Assembly (NCBI RefSeq): GCF_006345805.1
Contig: NW_021834481.1
Location: forward strand, 1 to 34,003
Length of the DNA stretch: 34,003 nt
Direction of reading: 5' to 3'
DNA from: Octopus sinensis
Taxonomy: Eukaryota
Numbering within the stretch: position 1 is the first letter of the stretch; the number at the start of each line of letters is the position of its first letter. The position numbers and the translations under genes are program-made. Under the pieces are notes generated by a model, which did no database searches, was not told where the DNA came from, and saw only the letters and a list, made by a program, of their open reading frames with translations. This document shows positions 22,484 through 22,496 of the stretch, piece after piece.

Positions 22484-22496
22484 AGCTATTTCGGCA
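22484..22496 (+). promoter_or_regulatory. Non-canonical PBS AGCTATTTCGGCA
   Basis: Flush with the LTR end CTACA; identical to element A, while the downstream sequence diverges immediately. Confidence 0.7.

Follow-up and report, generated by a model that had tools for sequence, protein, structure and literature searches.

The window analysed here, a 34,003-nucleotide (nt) stretch of Octopus sinensis DNA (contig NW_021834481.1, positions 1 to 34,003), carries two long terminal repeat (LTR) retrotransposons, element A on the minus strand and element B2 on the plus strand. In both of them the 5' LTR is followed by one and the same short sequence, a putative primer-binding site that is complementary to the 5' end of a tRNA. 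The ends of the LTRs were set independently of this sequence, by comparison of the window with itself and by alignment of the LTR copies.

Element A has a 5' LTR (TGTGGGATG...CACTACA; 9680..10003, minus strand) and a 3' LTR (5750..6045, minus strand) that is 90% identical to the 5' LTR, with a 28-nt repeat unit missing; both start with TGTGGGATG and end with CACTCACTACA. The 3' LTR is preceded by a polypurine tract (6060..6046), and CTCC flanks the element on both sides (10007..10004 and 5749..5746), a repeat of 4 bp only. The gag open reading frame (ORF) of 264 amino acids (aa) (8840..9634, minus strand, ATG at 9634) contains a CCHC zinc knuckle, and the pol ORF of 733 aa (6059..8260, minus strand) encodes DUF7047, RNase H and integrase. 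This pol is interrupted, and the protease/reverse transcriptase (RT) start lies outside the ORF.

Element B2 is bounded by a 5' LTR (TGTGGTGTG...ACTACA; 22219..22483, plus strand) and a 3' LTR with the same start, TGTGGTGTG, and the same end, ACTACA (28313..28588, plus strand). A polypurine tract ending in AGATCAGGGGGCG (28298-28312) stands before the 3' LTR, and the whole is enclosed by a 5-bp target-site duplication, GTATA (22214..22218 and 28589-28593). The gag ORF (251 aa; 22537..23292, ATG at 22537) again carries a CCHC zinc knuckle, and the pol ORF (762 aa; 25989..28277) encodes RT, DUF7047, RNase H and integrase, both on the plus strand. The interior of B2 is rearranged and partly duplicated, since 23502-24577 matches 26500-27556 and 24625-25505 matches 26433-25553 in inverted orientation; because of these internal duplications B2 measures 6.37 kb (22219-28588), against 4.2-5.2 kb in its relatives.

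The 13-mer AGCTATTTCGGCA occurs in two exact copies in the window, at 22484-22496 on the plus strand and at 9667-9679 on the minus strand, and a third copy was not found there even with up to 2 mismatches. By arithmetic, any one 13-mer should turn up ~0.001 times in the 68 kb of both strands, and this expectation, together with the conservation across the junctions described below, led to the rejection of chance as the origin of the pair. The conserved unit is the 12-mer AGCTATTTCGGC, which occupies 22484..22495 (plus) in B2 and 9668..9679 (minus) in A; the following base is A in both copies (22496 and 9667, respectively). In both elements the site starts at the first base after the LTR end ...CTACA, and the gag ORF begins 32-40 nt past AGCTATTTCGGCA. 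Neither TGG nor any other candidate primer site is present from the LTR end to the gag ATG, so that a canonical site, with a TGG start and complementarity to the 3' terminus of a tRNA, is absent from A and B2. The first-pass annotation of this DNA had placed the motif directly after ...CTACA, without TGG, in A (minus) and B2 (plus), and the independently set LTR boundaries agree with it. It had also described the LTRs of A and B2 as barely alignable: indeed, only the termini TGTGG... and ...CTACA are common to them, with no alignment in between, and MAFFT leaves the two sites out of register. The pol sequences of A and B, by comparison, are ~72% identical at the nucleotide and 70% at the amino acid level. 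As the pol genes are related, the shared site reflects conservation within one lineage, and not two separate inventions.

The lineage and the conservation of the site

The pol ORF of the B family has hundreds of homologues, among them proteins from Argonauta, Oratosquilla, Petrolisthes and Aplysia as well as a great number of ~4-kb contigs (ENA, Logan, JGI). The relatives used here comprise 61 loci obtained when metagenome contigs were scanned by means of a pol alignment, and 13 loci from contig look-ups for 12 homologues, the junction between LTR and site being readable in 12 of these 13. The host assemblies were those of Argonauta hians (GCA_054771915.1), Aplysia californica (GCA_000002075.2), Watersipora subatra (GCA_963576615.1), Petrolisthes manimaculis (GCA_034508575.1), Oratosquilla oratoria (GCA_046742065.1) and Nymphon striatum (GCA_016618385.1). 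Metagenome contigs of the lineage are often circular permutations or tandem repeats; for example, positions 1-8081 of L019 consist of two 4013-bp units with 100% identity, and similar cases are L004, L010, L017, L020, L021, L030 and L033. Such contigs could stem from assembly cycles driven by the LTRs, from tandem arrays like those of the window, or from circles with one LTR.

The lineage has the features of LTR retrotransposons, namely direct LTRs with TG...CA-type ends, a target duplication, a polypurine tract, and gag and pol genes, the latter encoding protease, RT, RNase H and integrase. Across the pol alignment there is no variation in the residues DEDD of RNase H, YxDD of RT and HHCC/DDE of integrase. 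The domain order protease-RT-RNase H-integrase does not discriminate, because it is common to Ty3/gypsy, BEL/Pao and retroviruses. RT is followed by DUF7047 and then by an RNase H of the cellular/retroviral type (RVT_3, RNase_H). The Ty3/gypsy domains RT_RNaseH (PF17917) and RT_RNaseH_2 (PF17919) were not detected in pol even at E<=10, and the BEL/Pao domains Peptidase_A17, DUF1758, DUF1759 and DUF5641 were not detected in gag or pol at E<=10. Among the PDB sequences listed as matches, all 10 obtained with one protein and the best 60 of 157 obtained with the profile, there is no Ty3 chain; they are integrases and RTs of retroviruses, the closest being mouse mammary tumour virus and other retroviral integrases and murine leukaemia virus/foamy virus RT. 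Assignment to gypsy, the label given in the first-pass annotation, is thus not supported by the Pfam and PDB sequence searches, and neither is assignment to BEL/Pao. Since the signature domains of both groups are absent, the superfamily is left open, and the DUF7047 lineage may be an unclassified one.

Among pol homologues, down to ~40% aa identity, 43 distinct junctions were obtained, from Argonauta, Aplysia, Watersipora, two crustaceans and many metagenome contigs. Across the lineage they follow the rule ...ACA/AGCTAT-NNN-GGC, where the slash marks the end of the LTR. The position of the motif was not presupposed; in every locus that reaches the region it lies on the coding strand, right after ...ACA and just before gag. 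The count by position was made on 42 distinct regular junctions, including the single one of the CCG type (L043), which was checked as genuine. Positions 1-5 and 10-12 of the site are invariant, position 6 has one exception, and positions 7-9 vary (TTC in 15 junctions, CAC in 9, CGC in 9, CCC in 4, CTA in 4 and CCG in 1). The ACA ahead of the site is nearly invariant, and only ~0.1 bit is found at position 13 and upstream of ACA. Of the 13 nt originally described, the first 12 form the conserved unit, and the 13th varies among relatives (A17, C12, G5, T8).

In the 11 complete relatives the LTR pair sets the LTR end; a matching flanking duplication agrees with it in 9, a 5-bp target duplication being seen in 8, and two gave no clean duplication. 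In one locus of the CC type (L063) the same 23-bp flank, GTTAGATATATCCAGCTTTGATG, precedes the 5' LTR and recurs a short way past the 3' LTR (8560-8582, 13616-13640), with no clean 5-bp duplication. The spacing between the LTR end and the site is zero in every junction. A conventional primer site further downstream was considered and rejected: in many elements the gag ATG follows 0-30 nt past the site (immediately in L029), too close for a second primer site to be hidden there. Young copies in Nymphon striatum, with nearly identical pol, carry two sites of 14 nt, AGCTATCACTAGGC and AGCTATCTCACGGC (L065 10501-10514, L067 4551-4564, L066 5611-5624). Each of them resembles a 12-nt site into which 2 nt were inserted, or a chimera between the CA and CTA types.

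Complementarity to tRNA 5' ends

A published northern probe directed at the 5' part of tRNA-Phe(GAA) from Drosophila has the sequence GCTCTCCCAACTGAGCTATTTCGGC (PMC7038984), and this tRNA therefore starts with GCCGAAATAGCTCAG. With the Drosophila sequence as reference, AGCTATTTCGGC complements nt 1-12 of tRNA-Phe(GAA) (GCCGAAAUAGCU) exactly, 12 of 12 and terminus to terminus, in agreement with the tRNA 5' end named in the first-pass annotation. The last LTR base before the site (A) faces C13 of this tRNA, and no pairing is possible between them. The 5' end of human tRNA-Lys3(UUU) is GCCCGGATAGCT (PMC8715211). In L043 (690-701), ACTACA is followed by AGCTATCCGGGC, of the CCG type, and then by gag, and this site complements nt 1-12 of tRNA-Lys3(UUU) exactly. 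Thus, tRNA-Phe, the partner named in the first-pass annotation, is an exact match for the elements of the window, but the lineage is not restricted to it.

Two site types, TT and CCG, hence complement two known tRNA 5' termini end to end, those of Phe (Drosophila) and Lys3 (human). These two 5' ends agree at G1-C3 and A7-U12, that is, opposite the invariant positions of the site. Expressed in tRNA numbering, G1-C3 and A7-U12 are fixed in the lineage, nt 4-6 in the middle of the acceptor stem vary, and conservation ends exactly at nt 1. The comparison of homologues that the first-pass annotation had proposed as a check was positive in form, as all 43 junctions keep the site with variation limited to tRNA nt 4-6, and a match to tRNA-Lys3 was added. 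The 12-bp RNA duplexes of site and tRNA are predicted to be stable, with energies of -18.7 to -23.5 kcal/mol.

Taken as a whole, this pattern is best explained by a 5' tRNA fragment of 12 nt, with its end at U12, for which the 12-mer serves as minus-strand primer-binding site; we consider this probable. Alternatively, the primer might be some other small RNA, host- or element-encoded, with the 3' end ...GCCGAAAUAGCU, and the tRNA match might be coincidental or derive from a tRNA-derived gene. The constraint indeed covers only 12 nt, with the tRNA as a putative pairing partner. Moreover, when viral contigs were scanned for GCCGNNATAGCTCAGTTGGGAGAGC, only phage tRNA-Thr and tRNA-Val matched; outside eukaryotes the same class of 5' 12-mer is thus found in these tRNAs, and the amino acid of a tRNA cannot be told from the 12-mer by itself. 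Such an RNA, however, would need an exact likeness to the 5' termini of two tRNAs, Phe and Lys3; the invariant positions are those identical in the two, the variable ones fall in the middle of the acceptor stem, and neither tRNA genes nor Rfam families were found in the window. We therefore regard another small RNA as an unlikely primer. A literature search for the variant 12-mers returned only unrelated primers. ARAGORN, run on 72 of the 77 fetched loci (L061, L062, L076 and L077 not included), found tRNA genes only in four phage contigs, besides one tRNA-Val next to the Oratosquilla element. The latter, a tRNA-Val(CAC) gene (L075, 3095-3167, minus strand), lies ~200 bp upstream of the 5' LTR and may hint at insertion near pol III genes, as a single case.

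The TT type was found in a cephalopod, a gastropod and a bryozoan, the CTA type (AGCTATCTAGGC) in two malacostracan crustaceans and likewise in the two closest relatives of the window's pol, and the CC type in two large ENA eukaryote assemblies. The crustacean elements are 62% identical in aa sequence to each other versus 59-63% to the mollusc elements, and the crustacean pair has a bootstrap value of 7% in the pol tree. Unrelated families in one sample have a type in common: there are three TT families in CAJIBL01, TT is found in the ERZ17400xx set and CC in the Ga01877xx set. The CA and CG types co-occur in samples and could pair with one tRNA through a G:U pair. The variant types thus appear to group by host or sample more than by the pol tree, which is only suggestive because this tree is nearly star-like. 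If the sites do follow host tRNAs, hosts of the TT type would be expected to possess GCCGAAATAGCT (Phe), and the crustaceans a tRNA starting with GCCTAGATAGCT.

Putative priming by a 5' tRNA fragment

In the proposed mechanism, the CCHC nucleocapsid part of Gag would melt the acceptor stem and the first three pairs of the D-stem and anneal nt 1-12 of the tRNA to the site. The tRNA would be cut between U12 and C13, either by the RNase H of the element, in the way Tf1 treats its self-primer, or earlier by a host nuclease; given the invariant DEDD, a Tf1-like cut by the element's own enzyme is plausible. The RT would then extend U12-OH into U5, which would explain why the last base of the LTR is exactly the one that precedes the site. 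Plus-strand strong-stop synthesis would copy the 12-nt RNA and run off its 5' end (G1), and this would account for the sharp stop of conservation after 12 nt. In Argonauta, the G before the site could pair with C13, yet the 5-bp duplication puts this G inside the LTR; the end of the primer therefore appears to be fixed at nt 12, and not set by the extent of pairing, although this is a single case.

Tf1 uses an 11-nt primer that is cut by the element's RNase H. Tf1/sushi elements and the lineage described here are alike in a very short primer (11 versus 12 nt) defined from an RNA 5' end, and the RNase H cut offers a ready mechanism for cleavage at 12/13. The similar length also invites the idea of Tf1-like self-priming, in which the 5' end of the element's transcript would fold back on the site and be cut by RNase H. 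The Tf1 primer, though, is part of its own transcript, whereas here the site has no self-complement, its partner matches host tRNA 5' ends, and the site showed no complementarity to the initial ~11 nt of the transcript. A reverse complement of the site with <=2 mismatches was found neither in the window nor in any of the loci. When G:U pairs are admitted, 10 of the 12 complete LTRs give best matches at the level of shuffled sequence, the two outliers being G/T-rich stretches at inconsistent positions, and one 12-mer serves families whose LTRs cannot be aligned. Self-priming is thus very improbable, and a better match in the element's own transcript 5' end, which the first-pass annotation had named as something that would speak against a tRNA, received no support.

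Complementarity by itself does not show priming, and the site might bind the intact 5' end of a tRNA, or a 5' tRNA fragment, for another purpose (packaging or tethering, translational control of gag, or small-RNA silencing), with synthesis started in some other way. In agreement with this, the site lies just ahead of the gag ATG, and 5' tRNA fragments with regulatory roles on LTR elements were reported, for example in PMC11962134, where the 5' fragment is homologous, not complementary, to the canonical site. On the other hand, the site abuts the U5 end in every junction, a zero spacing that the 3' end of a primer would dictate and that is needless for a tether or a target. No other conserved element or TGG-type site exists between LTR and gag, and a target of host silencing would be selected against, yet 10 of the 12 positions of the site are conserved. 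A non-priming role is accordingly possible, but we think it rather unlikely.

Several points weigh against priming by a 5' tRNA fragment. The exact matches to known tRNA 5' ends concern the TT and CCG types, the tRNA partners of the CC, CA, CG and CTA types being presumed, and the Nymphon sites AGCTATCACTAGGC and AGCTATCTCACGGC fit canonical tRNA 5' ends only with a 2-nt bulge. The usual short 5' tRNA fragments are 14-16 nt long, and we know of no 12-nt 5' tRNA-Phe fragment. The pol tree, as mentioned, is nearly star-like, and priming itself is a prediction from sequence comparison.

Textbook primer-binding sites use the 3' end of a tRNA, the exceptions being copia and Ty5, with an anticodon-cut tRNA, and Tf1, with its own transcript. 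Standard annotation tools look for 3'-end complementarity only and would, for this reason, miss or misassign the primer site in this abundant lineage. Like retroviruses, Ty1 and Ty3, the lineage has a site right after U5, a polypurine tract, TG..CA-type ends and a 5-bp duplication, and its LTR abuts the site as in Ty1. It differs from them in that the canonical site starts with TGG and pairs with the 3'-terminal 8-18 nt including CCA, while here there is no TGG and the complement is that of nt 1-12. The copia and Ty5 sites correspond to an internal region of initiator tRNA-Met near the anticodon stem and belong to Ty1/copia elements. In contrast, the lineage here has the 5' terminus (nt 1-12), an implied D-stem cut, Phe as the match (Lys-UUU-like in one relative) and the order RT-RNase H-integrase. 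The site does not complement an internal stretch of initiator tRNA-Met, as a half-tRNA primer would require, but the 5' terminus of tRNA-Phe/tRNA-Lys3. The likeness to copia and Ty5 would consist in a cleaved host tRNA acting as primer in place of the native CCA end, with the 5' part of the tRNA staying on the cDNA. A review of 2017 lists native 3'-end priming, bipartite sites, tRNA-independent Tf1, the copia half-tRNA and the Ty5 anticodon-loop cut, and none of these modes uses the tRNA 5' terminus (PMC5371799). In the literature search, likewise, no site that complements the 5' terminus of a tRNA was found to be described, with subscription journals mostly outside its coverage, in line with the statement of the first-pass annotation that no such priming mode was known to it.

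With a complement that is lineage-wide and sharply bounded, priming by a 5' fragment as a new variant of tRNA-primed reverse transcription appears to be the best explanation. If true, it would add a further priming mode and a specific cleavage in the D-stem, by RNase H on the RNA duplex or by a host nuclease. A wider proposal, to which we give about even credence, is that a large unnamed lineage of compact, retrovirus-like elements (DUF7047, cellular-type RNase H, an integrase nearest to those of retroviruses), widespread among environmental eukaryotes and marine invertebrates, primes from nt 1-12 of host tRNAs freed by a measured D-stem cut, and that its site tracks the host acceptor stem and switches between tRNA-Phe and tRNA-Lys(UUU). 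The 14-nt chimeric sites of Nymphon would then be footprints of tRNA switches. The rule ...ACA/AGCTAT-NNN-GGC is simple enough for annotation of the lineage, and it makes host-element co-evolution testable at a 3-nt window.

Surroundings of the elements in the window

The region from 10004 to 28588 consists of nested copies of the B family, some direct and others inverted. Two further B-family LTR copies (17245..17505, plus strand, and 20867-21128) are followed by flanking DNA and not by the site. The flanks after these LTRs (17506-17560 and 21129-21180) read CACACACATCCCCCGGTCTGAGATTCGAACCCGCGAATTCTCGACCGCGAGT and include the reverse complement of the tRNA T-arm-like sequence GGTTCGAATC; ARAGORN and Rfam made no call in either interval, and the flank may represent a tRNA-derived short interspersed element. 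The retroelement cluster is bordered by long microsatellite-like arrays with a periodicity of 8-14 nt (1283-4600 and 28554-33170).
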